From the sequence record MW384823.1: DNA of 64,000 nt, one strand, 5' to 3'. Shown here one piece after another: positions 1 to 25,638 of the stretch; within the stretch, counting starts at the first letter, position 1, and each line of letters opens with the position of its first letter. Made by a program: the position numbers and the translations under genes. The notes under the pieces were generated by a model, which was given only the letters and a program-made list of their open reading frames with translations, searched no databases and was not told the origin of the DNA.

Positions 1-1098
1 TTTCTTCTTATCATTCTCAGGGCCAGCGATTGCGATAGCGTTGAGCGACTTATAAATGCTCGGCAGGTCAGAAACTTCCGTGGTCGGTAACGGGATAGTG
101 CCGTTATTTTTCTCAGCAGCGGTGAGCGCGCGCCATTCGCCGAATTTGGAAATGGCTTTTACTTGGAGATCATATGGGAACAGGGGCAAATATAATGCCG
201 CGACGTCTTCTTGGTTTGGAATCCCTCGGATAGACCAGCCAGGAATGATGGTGAATTTGGTGGTGGTGAAAATTTCCGGGAAGACCGGCACCCAATCCTT
301 ATTCCCATAATCCGAGTTCGCCAGAATGTAATCACGTAGTGCTTGTTTCTGACGAGTTGGGTTCAAACCTGCCCGACCGTAGATTATGAGGGTCATTGGA
401 ATGATCAATGTCGCCTCGTAGTCCTCGCGGTCGTGCCAGGTGTAGTTGTGCGTTAAACGCGCCGTAAATGGATAACCGTCAGCGAGCACGTTGACTTTAT
501 CATCGTGGTCGGGTAAGTTGAAAGATTCCATCGCTTTTGCGACAACCGTTTTGACAGCTTGGAAAGTGTCAACCGGCATGATGGGCATCTGCACTTCAAT
601 TTCCCAGCCAAGATAGTCTTGATCAAAATCAGCGTCTGAGAACCAAACCATAATTTGGTTATCAACATCGGATGGACTTTCTACTTTGTCCGCCGTGGTT
701 TCGAATTTCCAGCTCACCCAGCGTGGGAACCAGTTACCGTTTGCCTGAATCATGGCACCCGTCTGCACATTGCTGATTGTGGTTTGGAATTGTCCCACTA
801 ACAAACGCTGAAACTCTGACTCGTCATTTTTCGTATTGCCCAGGATCGCTTGGTTATAAATCCACTGGGTCAATCCGAGGACGTGGTCAGTAAAGAGTGC
901 CGGTACTTTTATCTTCGTGTTGTCGCGAAGATACGTGAACGCCACTAATTCAACCTGAAGGTTAGCCTTTGCGAATTTTTGTTTATTCTTCGCAAAAGAC
1001 CAACTTTGATCGGATAACTCACCTACTGGAGCAACTGCACCTTCAGGAGCGTTATCGATTAGTGCCGGTATTTCGATGAAGCCTTGTAAATTGAACAT
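1..1098 (-). CDS. Partial CDS running off the window start; probable virion structural protein
   Basis: Not in the ORF track. ATG at 1098 (MFNLQGFIEIPALIDNAPEGAVAPVGELS...). The segments I translated by hand are open and in frame with position 1 (...AGPENDKKK). Structural role is inferred from context only. Confidence 0.7.
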   Translation of the reverse strand, partial: MFNLQGFIEIPALIDNAPEGAVAPVGELSDQSWSFAKNKQKFAKANLQVELVAFTYLRDNTKIKVPALFTDHVLGLTQWIYNQAILGNTKNDESEFQRLLVGQFQTTISNVQTGAMIQANGNWFPRWVSWKFETTADKVESPSDVDNQIMVWFSDADFDQDYLGWEIEVQMPIMPVDTFQAVKTVVAKAMESFNLPDHDDKVNVLADGYPFTARLTHNYTWHDREDYEATLIIPMTLIIYGRAGLNPTRQKQALRDYILANSDYGNKDWVPVFPEIFTTTKFTIIPGWSIRGIPNQEDVAALYLPLFPYDLQVKAISKFGEWRALTAAEKNNGTIPLPTTEVSDLPSIYKSLNAIAIAGPENDKKK

Positions 1099-1120
1099 AA
1101 AAATAAACTCCGAGGTGAGC

Positions 1121-1609
1121 ATGATAGCTGCAATTATTAAACTGCTTCCTTTTCTCCAGTTGCTTTTAGAAGCATTCAAGCCGGGGGATGGAGAAAAGGT
1201 AACCCGAGCCAATAAAATCACAGCACTCGCAATCGTTTTACTTCTGACGTATTCACTCTTTGTGTCGTACGCCTACGTTGACCAGTTTCATAAATTGGTT
1301 CAGATTCGAGAACACGACCAGTACGTCGCTCGCCAGAACGAGGAGCGTGGAGAGACCATCAAAACGCAGGCGGATGAGTTAAGGACGCTCTACAGCCGCA
1401 TTTTCGAATGCTTGAGCAATCGACCATATGATGGCGCGAAGGGCGCAGCAAGTGTCCCTCCTCCTGCACCGGTAGCGGTACCTCAAACACCGGTTCACAC
1501 CGAAACCAAAACCACCGACAATAAGCGCGAAGCTGCGGCGAAGCCGGTAGGTGTAGTAGATATGAGTCAGTTCCGTCAAGAACTGCTCAGGAACCTAAAC
1601 GAGGAGTGA
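1121..1609 (+). CDS. Putative inner-membrane spanin (i-spanin, Rz-like)
   Basis: GAGGTG RBS before ATG 1121. One hydrophobic segment (ITALAIVLLLTYSLFVSYAYV), then a coiled-coil-like region and a Pro-rich linker. Directly upstream of a lipoprotein gene. Confidence 0.6.
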   Translation: MIAAIIKLLPFLQLLLEAFKPGDGEKVTRANKITALAIVLLLTYSLFVSYAYVDQFHKLVQIREHDQYVARQNEERGETIKTQADELRTLYSRIFECLSNRPYDGAKGAASVPPPAPVAVPQTPVHTETKTTDNKREAAAKPVGVVDMSQFRQELLRNLNEE

Positions 1610-1611
1610 AA

Positions 1612-2076
1612 ATGAGGGTCATGCTAATTTGCTTATCGCTGTTGCTAACAGCGTGTAGCAGCTGGGCACCCGTCAAGACGACCACTGCAAATACCGAGTG
1701 GTCGGTTCGTGAACTTGGACCACCCCCTGTTTATCCACAAGGGGTAGTAAGTCTGGATGACCCGCGATACCGTTCGTGGGTGGCAGATGTTAATGCGTAT
1801 GCGTACTACGTGTTCGTGTACGCCCGTAATCTTAATGATTACGCCAGAGTTCACGGGTGGCGGCCACCGCAGGTTGCGCCCATTTGTGAGAAGTTTGATT
1901 TGTGGGTGGTTCATCCCATTCCACAACGCATTACCTTGGACGAAAGTGCTCGCCGTCCTGAGGACATCTCACGCGATTTGGCAACGCAGCTCAAGCGCAT
2001 CCTACTGAACTACCGTGAAGATCGTAAGTCTTTCCAAAAAGCATACGAAGCCCACCTTAGCACATGCCTTAACTAA
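1612..2076 (+). CDS. Lipoprotein; putative outer-membrane spanin (o-spanin, Rz1-like)
   Basis: GAGGAG RBS. Signal peptide MRVMLICLSLLLTA-C with an LTAC lipobox, followed by Pro-rich segments (LGPPPVYP, WRPPQVAP). Confidence 0.65.
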   Translation: MRVMLICLSLLLTACSSWAPVKTTTANTEWSVRELGPPPVYPQGVVSLDDPRYRSWVADVNAYAYYVFVYARNLNDYARVHGWRPPQVAPICEKFDLWVVHPIPQRITLDESARRPEDISRDLATQLKRILLNYREDRKSFQKAYEAHLSTCLN

Positions 2077-2079
2077 ACA

Positions 2080-2119
2080 CGACACCTATTCCTTCGGGGG
2101 TAGGTGTCGCTTTATTTTT
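2080..2119 (+). terminator. Intrinsic terminator with UUCG loop
   Basis: CGACACCTATTCC-TTCG-GGGGTAGGTGTCG followed by CTTTATTTTT, directly after the o-spanin stop. Confidence 0.85.
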
Positions 2120-2163
2120 ACACAACCAACCCATCTAATGTATACCCACAGGAGAGTTTAATC

Positions 2164-2919
2164 ATGACCGAAGTCGCCCCAACTAAACGCACACCGAATA
2201 TCTTCGATGCGCCCGACATCCATATCCCAACTATCGTCATCGGTATTGACGTCGAGACCAAGTCAACCCGCGCTGATGCGTATCCGGTTGCTATCGGCGC
2301 AGGGGCATGGGACATCGCCACGATGCGTCTGATTGCAACCCACTACCAGACCATCGACCCAAACGATGAAAAGGCAAAGGCCATCTTCCACGAAGACCCG
2401 TACACGATGGCGTGGTGGCGTGGGGAAGGGGACAACCCCGACTATGCACCGTCGCGTGAAGCTTACGCCGAAGCGTTCTCTGGCACCATGGCAATGCCAG
2501 AAGCCTTGTGGGGAATGTACAACTTCCTTGAGAAGTTCAAATCTCATAAGGTTGCACTGACTATGCGTGGCCCAGAATTCGACCAACCGATTCTGATGAA
2601 CGCTTTTGCCCAGTGTGATGTTCCAACCAGCCTCCTGAAACGTTTCTCGATGCTGGATTCTGACCGGACGGCGGAGCGTATTATGTACGCGTTTAACCTG
2701 ACGCCGGACTACCGCGCGGAGTCACACAACTGGACACGCGGCAAAGACGCCTATTTACACCACGCCTGCTTTGATGCGGCGCGTGAAGGCTATGTTACTG
2801 CCCGTATTTATCACTTAGCACTGATTGCACGTCTGCACGGCTTTGACCGTATGCTGGAAGCGCACAATCAACTGATGACCGGTGAATATACGGCGATGGA
2901 TTATCTGAGAGAGGAATAA
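2164..2919 (+). CDS. DEDDh (DnaQ-like) 3'-5' exonuclease
   Basis: Exo I IGIDVET, Exo II RGPEFDQPIL, Exo III HHACFDA. Start moved to ATG 2164 (GGAGAG RBS) because the track start lies inside the terminator. Confidence 0.75.
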   Translation: MTEVAPTKRTPNIFDAPDIHIPTIVIGIDVETKSTRADAYPVAIGAGAWDIATMRLIATHYQTIDPNDEKAKAIFHEDPYTMAWWRGEGDNPDYAPSREAYAEAFSGTMAMPEALWGMYNFLEKFKSHKVALTMRGPEFDQPILMNAFAQCDVPTSLLKRFSMLDSDRTAERIMYAFNLTPDYRAESHNWTRGKDAYLHHACFDAAREGYVTARIYHLALIARLHGFDRMLEAHNQLMTGEYTAMDYLREE

Positions 2920-4439
2920 TGGACGTTAAAGAGTACGATCATGTCGTCGTCTATACGGACGGTAGTCGTGTAGGCCCTCCTAATGGTACGGGGGGCGGTA
3001 TCCATGGATACGCTTTCAACACTGGGGTGTTAAATGAAAATACCCCGTACAGCCTGCCGGACGTAGAGGAGTGTGTCACGACCAACGGGTACAAAAAGTT
3101 CCCGAAGGACATTAAGAAGCCCACGGTGCCTGAAACAGTTGATTTCTTCGACTGTGTAATTCCCGTTCCGGCGGAATTCTGGTCGGACGTGGCAGAACTG
3201 ATGGCATTTATCAGTCTCTTTGAAAACTCACCTATCCTTGCCAAGAACTACACCGTCTATATCGATGCGTCTTACGTAGTCAATGCGTGGAACGATTGGA
3301 TGGACGGTTGGCGCAAACGTGGTTGGACGAAGGCAGACGGTACCCCAATTGCCAACGTGAATCTCATCAAGAAGATTGATGAAATTAAAACTCGCCTGCG
3401 TCAGGAAGGACGTTCTATCCGCGTGATCAAAATCAAAGGTCACGCTGGGTTCTACGGCAATGAGCGTGCGGACATGATGGCGCGTAAAGCTTCGTCGATG
3501 GTCGCTGCTGGTCAAGGGGTTGAGTATCGTCCGTTGTGGAGTGTTTCCGGCGAGCTGCCTCCAGAACCCGAAGCTGAGGTGATGGGCAGTGACGGCAGTT
3601 TACTCAACATGCCGAAAATCACCAACACGAAATTCTGCTATCCGTTGGTGAACGAAGAACACCCGACCATGTCCATTAACGGTGAAAGCTGGAAGTACAT
3701 GTTCGGTGGGAACCACGCAAAGAACAAGGAAGACATCGTGTTCATCGGCAAGATGATTCCCGATGCGCAGTTTGCGGTGTTCCTGAGTAAAGAGGGTTGG
3801 GATAACGTTTACCAGTTGGTCAATAAGCACAACGAGCTGGCGTGGGATAATGTCCCGCCGATGAAACGTTACGACCCGATTGCCATTGTGTACAACACGA
3901 TGATTAAGCGCAAGAAGTTCCAAGATGCCGCCAAAGAAGGGTTGCCGGTTAACCTGATGAAATTCAGTGAAGATGGTAACCTGTGGTTGTACGAAGACCT
4001 TGCGATTACCCGTGTCGTGCGCCCTGCGCTGCTCTCTTACCGTGCGTTGGAAATCCGTGATGAACTGGCTGCCTTTTTACGCGACGGCGTAGAAGACCGC
4101 CCAAGCGTTGTGCTGAACGATATCACGCATCTGCTGTTTGATGAGAAAGACAAACCGGTGAAGACTTTTTACCGTAATGTCGACGTCAGCTTCAACGTGA
4201 AGGTCAACTACCCCGAAAGCGACAAGCAGATTCCGATTATCCTGACCCGTAATATCGACATGCCGGATCGTACCGACATGAACCGTATCATGGAGCCGGG
4301 CGGTAAATGGTACGTGGCTTGTCGTCGTCCCCAGAAACGTTGCGTGGAGTTTGCTGTGGTCTATATTGGTAAGGAATACCATGGGCTGTGGTGTGGCTAT
4401 TACGCCAACAAACGCATCTTGAAAGAAGAGGAAGTGTAA
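2919..4439 (+). CDS. rnhA: Ribonuclease HI with long C-terminal extension
   Basis: VYTDGS, VAELMA, VYIDASYV, WRKRGWTKADGTPIAN, KIKGHAGFYGNERADMMA: all RNase HI catalytic motifs are present. Confidence 0.92.
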   Translation: MDVKEYDHVVVYTDGSRVGPPNGTGGGIHGYAFNTGVLNENTPYSLPDVEECVTTNGYKKFPKDIKKPTVPETVDFFDCVIPVPAEFWSDVAELMAFISLFENSPILAKNYTVYIDASYVVNAWNDWMDGWRKRGWTKADGTPIANVNLIKKIDEIKTRLRQEGRSIRVIKIKGHAGFYGNERADMMARKASSMVAAGQGVEYRPLWSVSGELPPEPEAEVMGSDGSLLNMPKITNTKFCYPLVNEEHPTMSINGESWKYMFGGNHAKNKEDIVFIGKMIPDAQFAVFLSKEGWDNVYQLVNKHNELAWDNVPPMKRYDPIAIVYNTMIKRKKFQDAAKEGLPVNLMKFSEDGNLWLYEDLAITRVVRPALLSYRALEIRDELAAFLRDGVEDRPSVVLNDITHLLFDEKDKPVKTFYRNVDVSFNVKVNYPESDKQIPIILTRNIDMPDRTDMNRIMEPGGKWYVACRRPQKRCVEFAVVYIGKEYHGLWCGYYANKRILKEEEV

Positions 4440-5194
4440 TGCAGAAGCTTTACAGTGAAACGCTCGTCATGCACACCACACGGTTGGTTGAAGCGATGGC
4501 GGACTACGCCTATATGCTTTACGTCAAAGGACGGGCGGATTGCGGTATCGGCGATGCAATACCAAACTTCGACTGCGGAGAGGTTGGGAAGCAGGCCATG
4601 GCGGAAGTCGTGGCTGAACTTCTTCTCGATGCAATTATGGGGATTAACGCGGGCACCGGCTATAGCTATCGTACCGTGGTGAAGATGCCCGTTATTCACA
4701 CGGAGAAATACCAGAACTGGCGAGACTCGGGCAACTGTGGGATGTTCACCATCCAAGAGATGTTTGACGCCCATTGTCGTGAGTTGCCATTGGGGCCGTT
4801 GATTGAGGGGGCGATTCGTTGGTATACCCGTGAGTTTGTCAACGAAGTGCATAGCATCATCAACAACGAATGGTATTGCGATCGGGAAAATGAACTTGTT
4901 ATCTTCACAACCCGTGAAATGCTAGTTCGGCAAATACTGAACGGGACGGTGGTGTTAGCGTTGCTGTCACGGGAAGATTACGAATTTGCGGCCGAGGCAG
5001 ATTGTCTTGCTGATATCCGCGATGAGGTTTTCCAATACCCGTATTCGTTCGTTACCCAAAATGACATGAAGGTATTACACGAACGGATTCCGTCCTTCAT
5101 TCTCTCGCCGGAAGACCAAGACTCAGATGAAGACCCTGGGGTTGAACTCTTTGTCTTGAAGCCAGAAACGATTGATGGAATCAAAAAACTCTGA
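4439..5194 (+). CDS. Hypothetical protein
   Basis: TAATG overlap with the rnhA stop gives start 4439; 251 codons; acidic. Confidence 0.7.
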   Translation: MQKLYSETLVMHTTRLVEAMADYAYMLYVKGRADCGIGDAIPNFDCGEVGKQAMAEVVAELLLDAIMGINAGTGYSYRTVVKMPVIHTEKYQNWRDSGNCGMFTIQEMFDAHCRELPLGPLIEGAIRWYTREFVNEVHSIINNEWYCDRENELVIFTTREMLVRQILNGTVVLALLSREDYEFAAEADCLADIRDEVFQYPYSFVTQNDMKVLHERIPSFILSPEDQDSDEDPGVELFVLKPETIDGIKKL

Positions 5195-18499: not shown

Positions 18500-18928
18500 A
18501 TGAATACACTGTCTTTCGAAGCGGGTAAAGGGTTAAGCGTCAACGGACATCTGGTGCCGGACACCAACAACCACCATTTTGAGAAGCTCTATCGCCGTAT
18601 CGGTGTGGGGCGTAAGGTCAACCTGAAAGTCACCAACGAGATTGCCCTCAATGGCAACGTGGCGGCTTTAGGCCCGATGTATGGCTTCCGCCCAAGTCAA
18701 GATGCCGCGGCTGCTCTGTTGCAGCACGGCGAGTTTAGCAGTGGTGTGTACGCGTTCCGTTTACTCGGTTCGCTCCGTCGTGTGTCAAACAAACACGTCG
18801 GTCAGGGCATGACACCAACCGTTTTACAATCCGGCGAAATTATCGTCCTCGTACATTCCAATCACGAACACGCTTCGGGCTTGGATTTCATGATTAGCTA
18901 TTCCGAAGTGGAGAGTGCAGATGTCTGA
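18500..18928 (+). CDS. Hypothetical protein
   Basis: TAAGGA RBS; 142 aa. Confidence 0.7.
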   Translation: MNTLSFEAGKGLSVNGHLVPDTNNHHFEKLYRRIGVGRKVNLKVTNEIALNGNVAALGPMYGFRPSQDAAAALLQHGEFSSGVYAFRLLGSLRRVSNKHVGQGMTPTVLQSGEIIVLVHSNHEHASGLDFMISYSEVESADV

Positions 18929-19805
18929 CAGAATTTACCCCGTCTTAAAGAACTTTGAACGTGTCGATACGTGGAACACCGAATCCGACATTTATCGTCA
19001 CGGTAATGTACATCAGCAGTCACTGAAAATGTACCGCCATCTCGGTGAGCTGTGTGAAGGCGTCCAGAAGATGAAGCAGCTGGAAGTGGCTTCGGCGATG
19101 GGCAAGTTTGTGGTGGCGCTGGTCGGGGTGGCTTCGTTTGCAGGAGTCGATGCACAGGAGCTGGATGAGCTTTACAGCTACGCGGGCAGAAAGGCTACGC
19201 CATGCACCCCAGCGCAAGCTGCGTGCAATCTGGTGCGTTCTACGACCTCTATGGTCAACGATATCAACCAGTGGTTGTCTCCGGCCGGGACGCAAATGGC
19301 ACGGGCCATTGCGACGTCCTCTATCTGTGAAGTTTTCTGCCTGCTCAAGCAGAACGCTTCCCTGAATGCGGTGGTGTTAGACCGCACGATTGAGAACGCC
19401 ACAAACGTACTCTGTGCGAAGAAAGGCAAGATGGATGAGTTCGGTCTGTTTCACGCGGAAGAAACTACCATTGCCACCTCCAGAACCGGTTTTGTCCATC
19501 GTGGTGTGGGCGAGTGGATTAAATTGGCTATCAACCGAGATTTGGAAGGCCGCTTCGCAGAGCTGACCTCGCAGTTGCAGTTCGAATCGAACACCGATGA
19601 AGTCAGACTGCGGGTTGAGGAGACGATGAACAGCCATCTTGAGTTTTCTTTGACCAAACACGTTCGCATGAAGCCTGCCGTTAAGCACATTCTTAATGGC
19701 CTTACCCCGGCGGTCGTAGTTTCGCAAGAAGGCAACCGTCTCGAAGTTACGTCTAACAGCGATCTGCAAACGTTGTTCACTGAATTGGAAAAGGTAACCG
19801 AATAA
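18921..19805 (+). CDS. Degenerate MazG-like (NTP pyrophosphatase fold) protein with extra C-terminal domain
   Basis: Aligns along ~165 aa to 22954..23787, but EExGE is RHLGE and DGIGD is SAMGK. Confidence 0.65.
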
Positions 19806-20872
19806 TGAAACAGTATTTAGAACTGATACACACTGTGTTGAATGATGGTCATGAAAAAGCTGACCGTACCGGCACAGGCACCATCTCTATTTTCGGTCAC
19901 CAGATGCGCTTTGACCTGCGCAAAGGTTTCCCGCTAGTCACCACCAAAAAGTTGCATCTGCGTTCTATCATTCACGAACTGCTGTGGTTCCTGAACGGCG
20001 ACACCAACATCCAGTATCTGAAAGACAATAATGTCAGTATCTGGGATGAGTGGGCGGATGAAAACGGCGACCTTGGTCCTGTTTACGGCAAGCAGTGGCG
20101 TGAATGGAACGCCGACAAAATGGTGTCCATCGACGACATGAACCTTCGTCAGCATTTGGAAGACGAAGGGTATATCGAGCGTGACATGATGTCTATCGAA
20201 GGGGAGCACTATTTCCTCTACAGTAAGACCATCGATCAGATCCAGACCATCATCGACCAGCTGCGTAACGACCCTGACAGCCGTCGCATCATCGTCAGTG
20301 CATGGAATGTGGGGGAGCTTGACCAGATGGCGTTAGCGCCGTGCCATTCCTTCTTCCAGTTCTATTCTCGTTCGATGATGGGTAAAGAATTGGATGCGTA
20401 TCTGGCTGAGTACCTTAAAACCGATACGCGGTTGGCTGAGAAATACGCCGAGCAGGTTGCCCTTTGTGAAGCAGACCCCGATGGCGATCACGTCAGCTCA
20501 CACATGTTCTGCCTGACCAACGATATACCGACCCGCGTCCTGTCCTGTCAGTTGTACCAGCGTAGTGCAGATGTATTTCTCGGTGTGCCGTTTAACATCG
20601 CGTCTTACGCGCTTCTTACCCACTTGGTCGCGCACCACGTTGGCATGGTGGCGGGTGATTTCATTTGGACAGGCGGTGATACTCATCTGTACACTAATCA
20701 CCTCGAGCAGGCCACTTTGCAGCTGACTCGCGTACCGCACCCGCTACCAAAACTGCGAATCGTTAATACAAACGGCGTACTTCCTAAAACGATCTTTAAT
20801 CACGCTTTCGAAGATTTCGTGATTGAGGACTACGAAAGCCACCCCGCAATTAAGGCACCGGTTGCCATCTAA
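19805..20872 (+). CDS. thyA: Thymidylate synthase with two insertions
   Basis: [78 protein letters not shown]. Confidence 0.98.
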
Positions 20873-20881
20873 GGAACATGT

Positions 20882-21382
20882 ATGGCCGACAACGTACTGA
20901 AGTTTCCCGGTAAACCGAACGCTCACCCGGTCGTTGTCGCGCCTCGTGAGTATCGCGCACACTTTCCTATTCAGACCCGCGATGGGAAAGTGGATTCGTT
21001 TACAGTACCGGCGGGTGATATGTATTGGTGGGCGGCGATTTACGAACAAGTTGCTGCGACCAACCCGTTTTTTGAAAACGTCTTTTACTTTTACTCCGAA
21101 CCTTACGGCTGGCAGAATCAATCCTTTGCGAAACGTAAAACATCGTGTGAATTGACGATTGACCGCCGAACCCAGATGGAAATATTGAAAGCGGTGTCTT
21201 ATACGCACGTTCTGTCTTTTGATAGCCTTCTGAACGACGACGATTACCATCTTGTCCATGATAACGCCATGATGGTGTTGACTGACGATTTGGAAATCGA
21301 TTATGCAATGGGGATATTCATGTCCCCGACAACGAACCCCGACCGGTTCATCATTAATTTCGTGGAATGCCATAATGACTGA
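20882..21382 (+). CDS. Hypothetical protein
   Basis: TAAGGA RBS; 166 aa. Confidence 0.7.
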   Translation: MADNVLKFPGKPNAHPVVVAPREYRAHFPIQTRDGKVDSFTVPAGDMYWWAAIYEQVAATNPFFENVFYFYSEPYGWQNQSFAKRKTSCELTIDRRTQMEILKAVSYTHVLSFDSLLNDDDYHLVHDNAMMVLTDDLEIDYAMGIFMSPTTNPDRFIINFVECHND

Positions 21383-22250
21383 CAAACTCAATAACCTGTA
21401 TTTCTTCTCTGACCGTTTCTACACCATGCCGGGTGACAGCTACTCCTTCGGTGTTGTTGCTGCGAAAGACACGGCCGAAGCCAAACTGATGCTGGGTACC
21501 GAACTGGTTGATGGTCTGCCACTGGGCACCACGAACGCATCCGGCCAGATTCTGTGTGCGGAAGAAATTCGCCACATCGAACCGCGTGCCGACAGCGTAG
21601 CGAAAACCGTGGTTGCTGAGCTGTGGAAACTGAACGATGGCGTGGATGTTTCCGAGCGTGTGAAGTACCTGCGCGAAACCATTTCGAAAATGCAGGGTAT
21701 TGACTGTAGCAATCTGGAAGTGGACTTCACGCGTTGCCTGCGTATTCCGGGCGGTTGTACCAGCACCGGCAGTGACCTGTGGCGCATCATGGTGAAACAC
21801 CCGGACTTCCCAAACACTGTACCGATCATGCTGTCTGCGCAGGGCGACGGTTCAATCACCGGTAACGACGATGTGAACTTCACCAAACTTGGTGAAACCG
21901 AAGAGTACACCTACCACGAAAACGTGGATCGTGTGCTGACGCCTGAGTGGCTCATGCTGGACTTGTTGGAACAACACGGCCTGACCCCAGAAGACTGGTA
22001 CGTTATCGCCGGTACGGCGCGTGCAGCAGCCTATAGCGCTGCTCCGGTGGACGGCTGGGAAGAGGTGGCTGAGGTATACGGCCAGAATGAAAGCGCGCAC
22101 GTTATCCGCTTCTGGCTGAACCCAGACTGGCAGAATCTGATTGTGGCGGCTGTGGCGAAAGTGGTTGAGTCCATGCCAAAAGAGCCGTTGCCAGAAAACC
22201 TCGCCGACGAGCTGGCGGGTTCCGAATCTGCGGACGAAACCGCAGAGTAA
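21375..22250 (+). CDS. Hypothetical protein
   Basis: ATG 21375 overlaps the end of the previous gene; strong high-expression codon bias (CTG, GAA, ACC, AAC). Confidence 0.75.
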   Translation: MTDKLNNLYFFSDRFYTMPGDSYSFGVVAAKDTAEAKLMLGTELVDGLPLGTTNASGQILCAEEIRHIEPRADSVAKTVVAELWKLNDGVDVSERVKYLRETISKMQGIDCSNLEVDFTRCLRIPGGCTSTGSDLWRIMVKHPDFPNTVPIMLSAQGDGSITGNDDVNFTKLGETEEYTYHENVDRVLTPEWLMLDLLEQHGLTPEDWYVIAGTARAAAYSAAPVDGWEEVAEVYGQNESAHVIRFWLNPDWQNLIVAAVAKVVESMPKEPLPENLADELAGSESADETAE

Positions 22251-22272: not shown

Positions 22273-22725
22273 GTGTCTAAGACTCTAATCAATTACGATT
22301 TAGTAGTGCAAGAACTTTCCAAAGGCTTGATTGCTCTCGACAGTGAAACGGCGTTGCGTTGCAATATGCTTCCCCATATCGCGCTAAGTGAGTTCCGCAC
22401 GATTCGTTATGGTGCCGGTCGCCAAAAAGGCGTCACCGAATACATTTCGAAGTTAGCCGCGGGGCACAATGGACCGGTATTGGTTCTGACGCATGCCGTG
22501 GCGCTACGGGACGAATTCATGTTCCGTGTCGAAGGTAACTTTCCGGGTAAAGACAACATCACATCGTTATGTGGCTACTTCCCCGACAATTGGCGAGTTG
22601 AAAAGTTCAGCCTCGTTATTGTTGATGAAGCCGGTTTCTTCTTTAAGAAGTTTGGCTACGATAAAATCTATCGCAGTCTGGCAACACAAACGACTGATGA
22701 TGTAGTGATTCACCTGATTAACTGA
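22273..22725 (+). CDS. Small stand-alone P-loop/ASCE-like protein (terminase/SF2 ATPase-like, degenerate Walker A)
   Basis: IRYGAGRQKGVT (cf. GRQxGKT), VLVLTH strand and Walker B LVIVDEA. Start is GTG 22273 or 22264. Confidence 0.55.
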   Translation: MSKTLINYDLVVQELSKGLIALDSETALRCNMLPHIALSEFRTIRYGAGRQKGVTEYISKLAAGHNGPVLVLTHAVALRDEFMFRVEGNFPGKDNITSLCGYFPDNWRVEKFSLVIVDEAGFFFKKFGYDKIYRSLATQTTDDVVIHLIN

Positions 22726-22733
22726 GGTTTGTA

Positions 22734-22898
22734 ATGTCCCAAGTAGAGAAAGAAGTCATCGCACAAGCAGATAACGCTTCACTGGACGATTTGTTCGGTG
22801 GTGATATTCCGGGTGTGGACGAGAACGCAGTGGTTGAAGGCGGTGTTGATGCTGGCGCTGAAGACGACAACTGCGCAGGCGGTGCCTGCAAAATTTAA
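22734..22898 (+). CDS. 54-aa acidic peptide ending in an NrdA-like CxxxxC tail
   Basis: Missing from the ORF track. GAGGT RBS, ATG 22734, TAA 22898. Translation MSQVEKEVIAQADNASLDDLFGGDIPGVDENAVVEGGVDAGAEDDNCAGGACKI. Followed by a hairpin. Confidence 0.8.
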   Translation: MSQVEKEVIAQADNASLDDLFGGDIPGVDENAVVEGGVDAGAEDDNCAGGACKI

Positions 22899-22905
22899 CA
22901 AGAGC

Positions 22906-22925
22906 GGGTGTCCTTATGGACACCC
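22906..22925 (+). terminator. Hairpin / weak intrinsic terminator
   Basis: GGGTGTCC-TTAT-GGACACCC followed by CTATTTCATTTTTT. Confidence 0.65.
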
Positions 22926-22953
22926 CTATTTCATTTTTTAAGGACTATCAGAA

Positions 22954-23787
22954 ATGCAACAGACTTTTGAGTTACCGATTGAACACAAAGCCGTCATCCT
23001 GAACAGTGCCATCTTAGATTTCGTCATGCCTCAGTTGGCGGCGGCCGGTAAACGGATGTCTCGCATTACGCGTCTGGCAATCAGTAGTGAAGGCCCACAG
23101 ACGCTGGTTAACGGTTTTACCTTCGAAGGTGAACCGGCAGAATTCCACGCAATGCTGCGCTATCACACCGGTCTCGAGTTCCACAAAGAGCCGGTCTACC
23201 ATAACCGCATCGTCCCGCTGTACCGTGTGTCGCAGTGTGTGGCTAAAGTCATCGGCTGGTCAACTGACCGCGGTATTCTGGAAAACGGCCGTTGGGACTC
23301 ACAGGGTACCAAGCTGTATGAAGAAGACGGCGAAGCAGCAACCGGCGTGGGTAAAAACAAAAAGCGTCTGATCATCGACGGCATCGGTGATGCACTGGTT
23401 GTACTGGTCAACGTACTGGAACTGACCAGCATCGATGCGGCAGAAATTGCCCACATTTATCAGTTGGTGCGTGACACCAGAACTGTGGTGGACAACCCGC
23501 ACTACCATTTCCACAAAATGCGCAAGAACCTGACCGAAGTGGTCGATGTGGTTTACGAATGTGAAGCCATTGACTCACCGAAGAAAGTGGAAATCGGCCG
23601 CTTAACGCACGACGAACGTCAGCAGATGCTGGGTCATGCACAACAGGCTATCCATCACGCTAACCAGTTGGCGCGCCACTACGACTACTCGCTGGACGAG
23701 TGCTTCTCTCTGGCGTGGGATGAAATCAAAGACCGTAAAGGTTTCCTGAGCGCTGACGGCGTGTTCATCAAAGAAGCCGACGCTTAA
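22954..23787 (+). CDS. MazG-like nucleotide pyrophosphohydrolase
   Basis: W..DRGI...Q..KLYEEDGE...IIDGIGDALVVL...DECF..AWDEIKDRKG..DGVFIKE, the phage MazG-like signature with acidic ligands intact. Confidence 0.85.
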   Translation: MQQTFELPIEHKAVILNSAILDFVMPQLAAAGKRMSRITRLAISSEGPQTLVNGFTFEGEPAEFHAMLRYHTGLEFHKEPVYHNRIVPLYRVSQCVAKVIGWSTDRGILENGRWDSQGTKLYEEDGEAATGVGKNKKRLIIDGIGDALVVLVNVLELTSIDAAEIAHIYQLVRDTRTVVDNPHYHFHKMRKNLTEVVDVVYECEAIDSPKKVEIGRLTHDERQQMLGHAQQAIHHANQLARHYDYSLDECFSLAWDEIKDRKGFLSADGVFIKEADA

Positions 23788-25588: not shown

Positions 25589-25638
25589 ATAAAAAAGACT
25601 ACCTACTCCCGAAGGAGTAGGTAGCTTTATTTTTTTTG
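25589..25638. terminator. Bidirectional intrinsic terminator (repeat family)
   Basis: CTACCTACTCC-CGAA-GGAGTAGGTAG at 25599-25624, identical to 9104-9129, with A- and T-tracts. Confidence 0.9.

Follow-up and report, generated by a model that had tools for sequence, protein, structure and literature searches.

A 54-residue phage peptide with a class Ia NrdA-type redox tail and its possible role as a free-standing arm for host ribonucleotide reductase

The pEaSNUABM43_00248 gene of the Erwinia phage pEa_SNUABM_43 encodes an acidic peptide of 54 residues, annotated as a hypothetical protein, whose C-terminus (DDNCAGGACKI, directly followed by the stop codon) is, judged by its sequence, the redox tail of the large subunit (NrdA) of class Ia ribonucleotide reductase (RNR). 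In E. coli NrdA, the cysteines of this arm (C754 and C759) receive electrons from glutaredoxin (Grx) or thioredoxin (Trx) and re-reduce the active-site disulfide at each turnover. To our knowledge, the re-reduction arm has only ever been regarded as belonging to the α subunit. Other small proteins ending in the same tail are described below, and we give close to an even chance to the proposal that such mini-proteins form a widespread, unrecognized class, which occurs in RNR-less phages infecting Enterobacterales and Vibrio, in numerous uncultivated phages and, within the isc operon, in all Neisseriaceae sampled. Members of the class would plug into the relay from Trx/Grx to RNR, and through them RNR-less phages would control the re-reduction of the host enzyme.

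The peptide gene and its setting

The DNA analysed (the window) is the terminal 64 kb of the record MW384823.1 of pEa_SNUABM_43 (Machinavirus), a 241.9 kb jumbo phage and a relative of Salmonella phage SPN3US; window coordinates equal record coordinates minus 177904. The features discussed are collected in Table 1. The peptide gene is the last of a same-strand string in the order thyA, a 166-residue gene, a 291-residue gene (phrog_10453), a 150-residue gene (phrog_2586) and the peptide gene itself, which thus lies three genes downstream of thyA. Its GAGGT ribosome-binding site is spaced 5 nt from the ATG; it shares nucleotides with the TGA stop of the preceding gene, pointing to translational coupling of the two. 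On the 3′ side of the ORF, a hairpin with an 8 bp stem containing six G–C pairs (22906..22925) is followed by a T-rich run, and the MazG-like gene lies directly downstream. The peptide contains 13 Asp and Glu residues against two Lys and Arg, has a pI of ∼4 and two cysteines, and its chain is probably disordered. A preliminary description of this DNA, made from the letters alone, had noted the short ORF with its own ribosome-binding site and hairpin, the acidic chain with its characteristic ending and the location between thyA and a MazG-like gene in a nucleotide-metabolism context. The sequence, the translation and composition, and the annotation and PHROG assignments, respectively, confirm these points, and the ORF is an annotated gene.

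Table 1. Coordinates of the peptide gene, its neighbours and related tail ORFs. Positions refer to the window unless another stretch is named.
Feature	Position	Strand	Basis
Thymidylate synthase (thyA), first gene of the string	19805..20872	+	Annotation
291-aa gene (phrog_10453)	21375..22250	+	PHROG, homologues
150-aa gene (phrog_2586), upstream of the peptide gene	22273..22725	+	PHROG, predicted model
GAGGT ribosome-binding site of the peptide gene	22724..22728	+	Read from sequence
Acidic-peptide gene pEaSNUABM43_00248, 54 aa	22734..22898, stop included	+	ORF reading, annotation, homologues, selection
Conserved 30-residue module, residues 25–54 (IPG.D ... GGVD ... tail)	22806..22895	+	Alignment, substitution pattern
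NrdA-type tail DDNCAGGACKI	22863..22895	+	PDB sequence and profile matches, tblastn, column tally
Tail cysteine Cys47	22872..22874	+	Within the NrdA-type tail
Tail cysteine Cys52	22887..22889	+	Within the NrdA-type tail
Terminator-like hairpin and T-rich run, end of the thyA-to-peptide string	22906..22939	+	Read from sequence
MazG-like nucleotide pyrophosphohydrolase, opens the next transcription unit	22954..23787	+	Annotation, PHROG
ICP2 gene 68	3357..3569 of the stretch examined		
Tail ORF, N. meningitidis	5063..5191 of the stretch examined		Genome scan
Tail ORF, Neisseria contig	3167..3295 of the contig stretch		IMG/VR pattern scan

The gene content of pEa_SNUABM_43 includes thymidylate synthase, DHFR, dTMP kinase and MazG. 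The string from thyA to the peptide gene is flanked by two MazG-like paralogues, one at 18921..19805 (phrog_10269) and the other being the downstream gene in Table 1 (phrog_7855). The thymidylate synthase of the window has 355 residues and matches the 266-position Pfam profile in two stretches, indicating an insertion of ∼90 residues; relatives reach 416–420 residues. A strong bidirectional terminator-like hairpin with an 11–12 bp stem lies between convergent genes at 25598..25625.

Identity of the tail and absence of an RNR gene

The last 20 residues of the peptide gave a single match against all PDB chain sequences (E ≤ 10), to the C-terminus of 7mdi_A, a 773-residue class Ia RNR α subunit whose last eight residues are identical to those of the peptide. 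A profile of nine homologues gave 14 matches against all PDB sequences, all of them (14/14) to class Ia NrdA and aligned to the final residue; these include E. coli R1 (positions 747–761, ending DDGCESGACKI), 7mdi, 8vhp and 1qfn_B, a 25-residue NrdA peptide deposited with glutaredoxin. The individual NrdA matches are weak (E of about 0.1–0.8) owing to the short matched length of only 11–15 residues, which is offset by the restriction of the hits to NrdA and by their anchoring at the chain end. By our own estimate, the chance expectation for seven fixed residues at a chain end is ∼1e-4 in 1.8e5 sequences. The presence of 1qfn_B among the matches implies that an isolated NrdA tail is a ligand of redoxins; we take the NrdA peptide of this entry to be in a mixed disulfide with Grx1. 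The same terminal letters are shared by viral NrdAs with the full Pfam architecture (ATP-cone, all-alpha and barrel) and by the annotated RNR large subunit of Cronobacter phage CR3.

In the peptide, the tail has the layout C47-AGGA-C52-K-I at the extreme C-terminus. A tally of tail positions, in which invariance at the positions fixed by the search pattern arises by construction, shows that the remaining positions also agree between the stand-alone tails and those of NrdA (D at −11 and −10, G/N/D at −9, E/A at −7 and G/S at −6). For the acidic positions ahead of the cysteines, Asp occurs at −11 in 46/62 stand-alone tails and 23/26 NrdA tails and at −10 in 52/62 and 20/26, respectively. The earlier assignment of the ending to the NrdA redox tail is therefore upheld, with PDB searches returning only the C-termini of class Ia RNR α subunits, matched end to end. 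Searches of Pfam, NCBIfam and PHROGs gave no functional name for the peptide.

The absence of nrdA, previously noted for the window, holds for the window and extends to the whole 241.9 kb genome. No RNR is annotated in the record and no RNR domain was found in 20 large hypothetical ORFs of pEa_SNUABM_43. In tblastn against the whole record, a full 781-residue NrdA matches only through its residues 763–781, on the peptide, and blastn against E. coli genomes detected no nrdA-derived DNA. No Pfam profile, the RNR profiles PF02867, PF00317 and PF03477 included, gave a match, even at E ≤ 10, in the peptide and its three upstream neighbours; a viral NrdA analysed as a control yields all three domains. 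A reading of the four ORFs after thyA as a fragmented divergent RNR is unsupported by the Pfam and NrdA tblastn searches. The absence of RNR was examined in two phages, pEa_SNUABM_43 and ICP2 (see below). As there is neither a recognizable RNR gene nor an nrdA remnant, the peptide gene is not an nrdA pseudogene. The possibility raised at the outset, that the ORF might be the broken 3′ end of an nrdA gene, is contradicted: the flanks lack nrdA similarity and synonymous changes far exceed nonsynonymous changes.

Conservation and distribution of the family

Homologues were found by tblastn in 71 phage records with the full 54-residue query and in 84 with the last 30 residues. Among them are homologues from Machinavirus, Seoulvirus, Erskinevirus, Alexandravirus, Derbicusvirus, Cronobacter phage CR5 and Proteus phage 7; phiKZ, which encodes an RNR, gave no tblastn match to the peptide. 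Protein searches recover few of these, with only two near-identical proteins from a word-indexed search with the 54-residue query and 11 from a full HMMER scan, and most family members were obtained by tblastn and DNA pattern scans. An alignment of nine genera or types shows variation in the N-terminal half and 14 invariant columns in the last 30 residues, with C-x-G-G-A-C-K-I constant throughout. The two cysteines, the spacing between them and the terminal K-I do not vary in nine homologues found by similarity or in nine further representatives. Such invariance would suit full dithiol/disulfide cycling. Within the 30-codon module, synonymous sites are saturated (pS of 0.6–0.8) compared with pN values of 0.17–0.26. 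Against the nearest relatives the module shows six to seven synonymous and zero to one nonsynonymous changes, and third bases differ among relatives in the codons of the invariant last eight residues. This pattern clearly points to strong purifying selection on the peptide gene. The carriage of homologues by 71–84 phage records and the synonymous bias of the changes together argue that the ORF is not a chance one, and both the ORF and its cysteine pair, the conservation of which in relatives had been in question, are kept across genera. A 973-residue protein resembles residues 8–39 of the peptide, its acidic middle, in seven repeated stretches but has no tail, which is probably a low-complexity similarity.

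The N-terminal half contains the motif SLDDLFG, which is confined to the Machinavirus copies in the nine-genera alignment, and the N-terminal 34 residues match nothing in the PDB at E ≤ 10. The suggestion that SLDDLFG might provide a second docking site of the clamp-binding type is not supported, given this restriction to one genus and the lack of a PDB match. An NrdB-tail-like or clamp-type docking motif was likewise considered for the N-terminal half and rejected for want of PDB matches. A loose acidic–hydrophobic stretch ahead of the tail is common to many of the family groups.

The predicted model of the phrog_2586 protein shows a single RecA/helicase-like P-loop domain with weak Foldseek matches, and its profile has no match in the PDB. 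This gene adjoins the peptide gene only in Machinavirus, Seoulvirus and Erskinevirus; it was rejected as a universal partner, as hhalign shows the upstream genes in Alexandravirus and CR5 to be unrelated, and on the same hhalign comparisons of upstream genes no phage-encoded partner is universal. The model of the phrog_10453 protein is of low confidence (pLDDT of 58) and its Foldseek hits are meaningless. Proteins of this family have no conserved cysteine and only one invariant column. In two metagenomic relatives the tail module forms the C-terminus of a phrog_10453 homologue and the phrog_2586 gene is absent between them; these fused homologues lie at 3059..4126 and 1777..2721 of their respective contig stretches. 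At the end of the window's own 291-residue protein there is an acidic stretch, and it aligns to the beginning of the extension in the fused homologues.

The family extends well beyond the tblastn set. A profile scan of IMG/VR detected stand-alone copies in jumbo contigs and, as a second group, 36–49-residue ORFs in contigs of ∼60 kb, where the ORF lies between a 277-residue gene of unknown function and a dNMP kinase gene, with ThyX nearby. The DNA pattern C-x-x-G-A-C-K-I-TAA matched 104 stretches in IMG/VR, of which 80 were read. These contain 43 short open frames (two without a start codon and chance-like, and one a C-terminal NrdA fragment), leaving about 40 small stand-alone tail ORFs of 26–120 residues in at least nine sequence groups. 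The pattern scan also returned about 30 full-size NrdAs and, of intermediate size, three proteins (263, 296 and 360 residues) ending in the tail without a match to any Pfam or PHROG family; the three (at 1052..1843, 3025..3915 and 3661..4743 of their stretches) are mutually unrelated. In Vibrio phage ICP2, a 50 kb podovirus with no annotated RNR, the 70-residue gene 68 directly follows MazG and thymidine kinase (TK) genes and encodes a zinc-ribbon/rubredoxin-like CxxC...CxxC unit and then an NrdA-type tail. In Alexandravirus a dCMP deaminase gene is near the peptide gene. Across independent lineages the neighbours are thyA/MazG, dCMP deaminase, dNMP kinase/ThyX, TK/MazG and ThyA-like genes; some family members adjoin replisome genes and not nucleotide genes. 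A circular 'plasmid' of E. coli strain 98232 from a clinical assembly (NZ_CP173450.1; 221.9 kb) carries thyA, a phrog_2586-like gene, a 47-residue tail peptide and a MazG-like gene in the phage order, and resembles a jumbo-phage genome that was entered in the database as a plasmid.

One supposedly viral IMG/VR contig proved to be Neisseria, as recognized by the uptake-sequence repeats flanking the tail ORF. Here, the ORF encodes an acidic peptide of 42 residues with an NrdA-type tail between iscS and iscU; across Neisseria, Eikenella and Kingella its length is 42–45 residues. A genome scan gave 39 stretches, essentially all from Neisseriaceae (Neisseria species, Eikenella and Kingella), with the ORF just upstream of iscU in 39/39 and iscS on the other side wherever the stretch reaches it. 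The protein cluster of the Neisseria peptide has 210 members, and those with names are called 'hypothetical' except for one automatic lantipeptide label. The isc genes of N. gonorrhoeae are down-regulated anaerobically and up-regulated with peroxide (PMC3032703). The peptide had been regarded as a jumbo-phage product; its occurrence in jumbo phages stands, but this scope was too narrow, as other phages and bacterial chromosomes carry it too.

Possible function and comparison with known systems

We tentatively favour the explanation, at a probability somewhat below one half, that the peptide is a free-standing, trans-acting NrdA dithiol arm that supports host RNR. The phage would express the arm (Cys-x4-Cys-Lys-Ile-COOH) as a small acidic disordered peptide, the dithiol of which would be recharged by host Grx or Trx. 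The peptide would then act in trans on the active site of host NrdA and add reducing capacity during the period of high phage dNTP demand. The partners (host NrdA and Grx1 or Trx) and the stimulatory direction are what we infer from the sequence comparisons. The host is taken as the common denominator since no phage-encoded partner is universal, and a supporting arm is favoured because the phages depend on host RNR, both cysteines are kept and the neighbouring genes feed DNA-precursor supply. Against this, a free peptide must compete with the tethered arm of NrdA, so that a net boost is kinetically uncertain. The weakness of each single NrdA match, the place of the Neisseriaceae copy in the isc operon and the family members that adjoin replisome genes also count against it.

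The main rival, which we regard as unlikely although appreciable, is a competitive mimic, in which the tail would block the entrance to the NrdA active site or soak up Grx/Trx. Free peptides corresponding to RNR subunit tails inhibit RNR in trans, and in yeast, Sml1 reportedly competes with the tail of R1. The identity of the motif with that of NrdA suits a mimic as well as it suits a supporting arm, the peptide is small, acidic and of low complexity, and the Neisseriaceae copy, in a stress-responsive operon, could brake RNR. However, these phages lack an RNR of their own and blocking the host enzyme would starve a 240 kb genome of precursors; the gene is located among dNTP-supply genes, and a simple blocker has no need for both cysteines to be invariant.

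A little less probable again is a portable arm, rechargeable by redoxins, that would serve clients other than RNR, either fused or neighbouring proteins or, in Neisseriaceae, IscS/IscU in Fe–S assembly. The tail does end phrog_10453 homologues on two contigs, ICP2 gene 68 and the three unrelated mid-size proteins, and the constant position upstream of iscU, with iscS opposite, in organisms whose NrdA has its own tail hints at a non-RNR client. The lack of a conserved cysteine in the phrog_10453 proteins, with their single invariant column, speaks against such clients, as do fusion partners that are mutually unrelated and match no family, the lack of a universal partner and a tail that is letter-for-letter NrdA rather than a generic CxxC.

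A RiPP precursor, in which an acidic leader would precede a Cys/Gly-rich core, is very improbable. In its favour, the peptide is short, acidic at the N-terminus and rich in Cys and Gly at the C-terminus, one Neisseria copy is automatically named 'FxLD family lantipeptide' in UniRef and the phage has two radical SAM genes ∼60 kb from the peptide gene, but maturase, protease and exporter domains are absent from every neighbourhood examined, the would-be leader (the N-terminal half) is variable and the 'core' has the same sequence as the C-terminus of a housekeeping enzyme. The two radical SAM genes (PF04055 plus a 4Fe–4S single-cluster domain) are adjacent at record positions 138669..140905, outside the window, and adjoin small hypothetical ORFs; no link to the peptide was found. 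A functionless relic of a lost nrdA 3′ end, or a chance ORF, has a negligible probability: NrdA similarity is indeed confined to the very end of the ORF, but a full NrdA query has no other match in the genome, the gene is equipped with its own ribosome-binding site and terminator, 71–84 phage records and many contigs keep it, and its dN/dS pattern shows strong constraint.

Literature searches gave no description of NrdA tails that stand alone, and none of the family members has a name in Pfam, NCBIfam, PHROGs, NCBI or UniRef. The tail module is known; the separate gene family appears to be new. The presence of a separately encoded, strongly selected arm in several unrelated RNR-less phage lineages, and in a bacterial family with two human pathogens among its members, suggests that the final electron transfer in dNTP synthesis is open to supply or interception in trans. 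If the support of host RNR by a free arm is correct, it would represent a new and very compact tap on host nucleotide metabolism in phage biology and would offer RNR enzymology a natural trans-acting tail for study. For annotation, the tail supplies a name for at least four PHROG families and a conserved Neisseria ORF, all labelled 'hypothetical'.

Among known systems, yeast Sml1-type regulators, which are small, disordered and active on the large subunit, resemble the peptide. Sml1 is not known to have the cysteine pair, and its only known action is inhibitory; searches of PDB, Pfam, NCBIfam and PHROGs gave no Sml1-type sequence relationship. The C-terminal domain of long class II RNRs has a zinc finger that has been proposed to position the cysteine pair for reduction of the active site (PMC9669993), and ICP2 gene 68 shares this layout of a zinc-ribbon-like unit followed by a terminal cysteine pair. 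The comparison is one of layout only, and gene 68 differs in being stand-alone and in carrying a tail of the class Ia type; the window peptide has no zinc ribbon. The closest similarity is to the class Ia NrdA tail itself (E. coli and N. gonorrhoeae 7mdi), which is alike in its C-terminal place, its acidic D-D/E and its Cys-x4-Cys-K-I end; nine of the last 11 residues are shared with E. coli, compared with identity over the last eight for 7mdi_A. Unlike NrdA, the peptide lacks the RNR barrel, is a 54-residue product of a genome without RNR and contains an IPG.D ... GGVD region with no NrdA counterpart. Chain B of 1qfn is, like the phage product, a free peptide carrying the tail and gives the same end-to-end alignment, but it is a laboratory fragment of NrdA, whereas the phage peptide is the product of a natural, selected gene.
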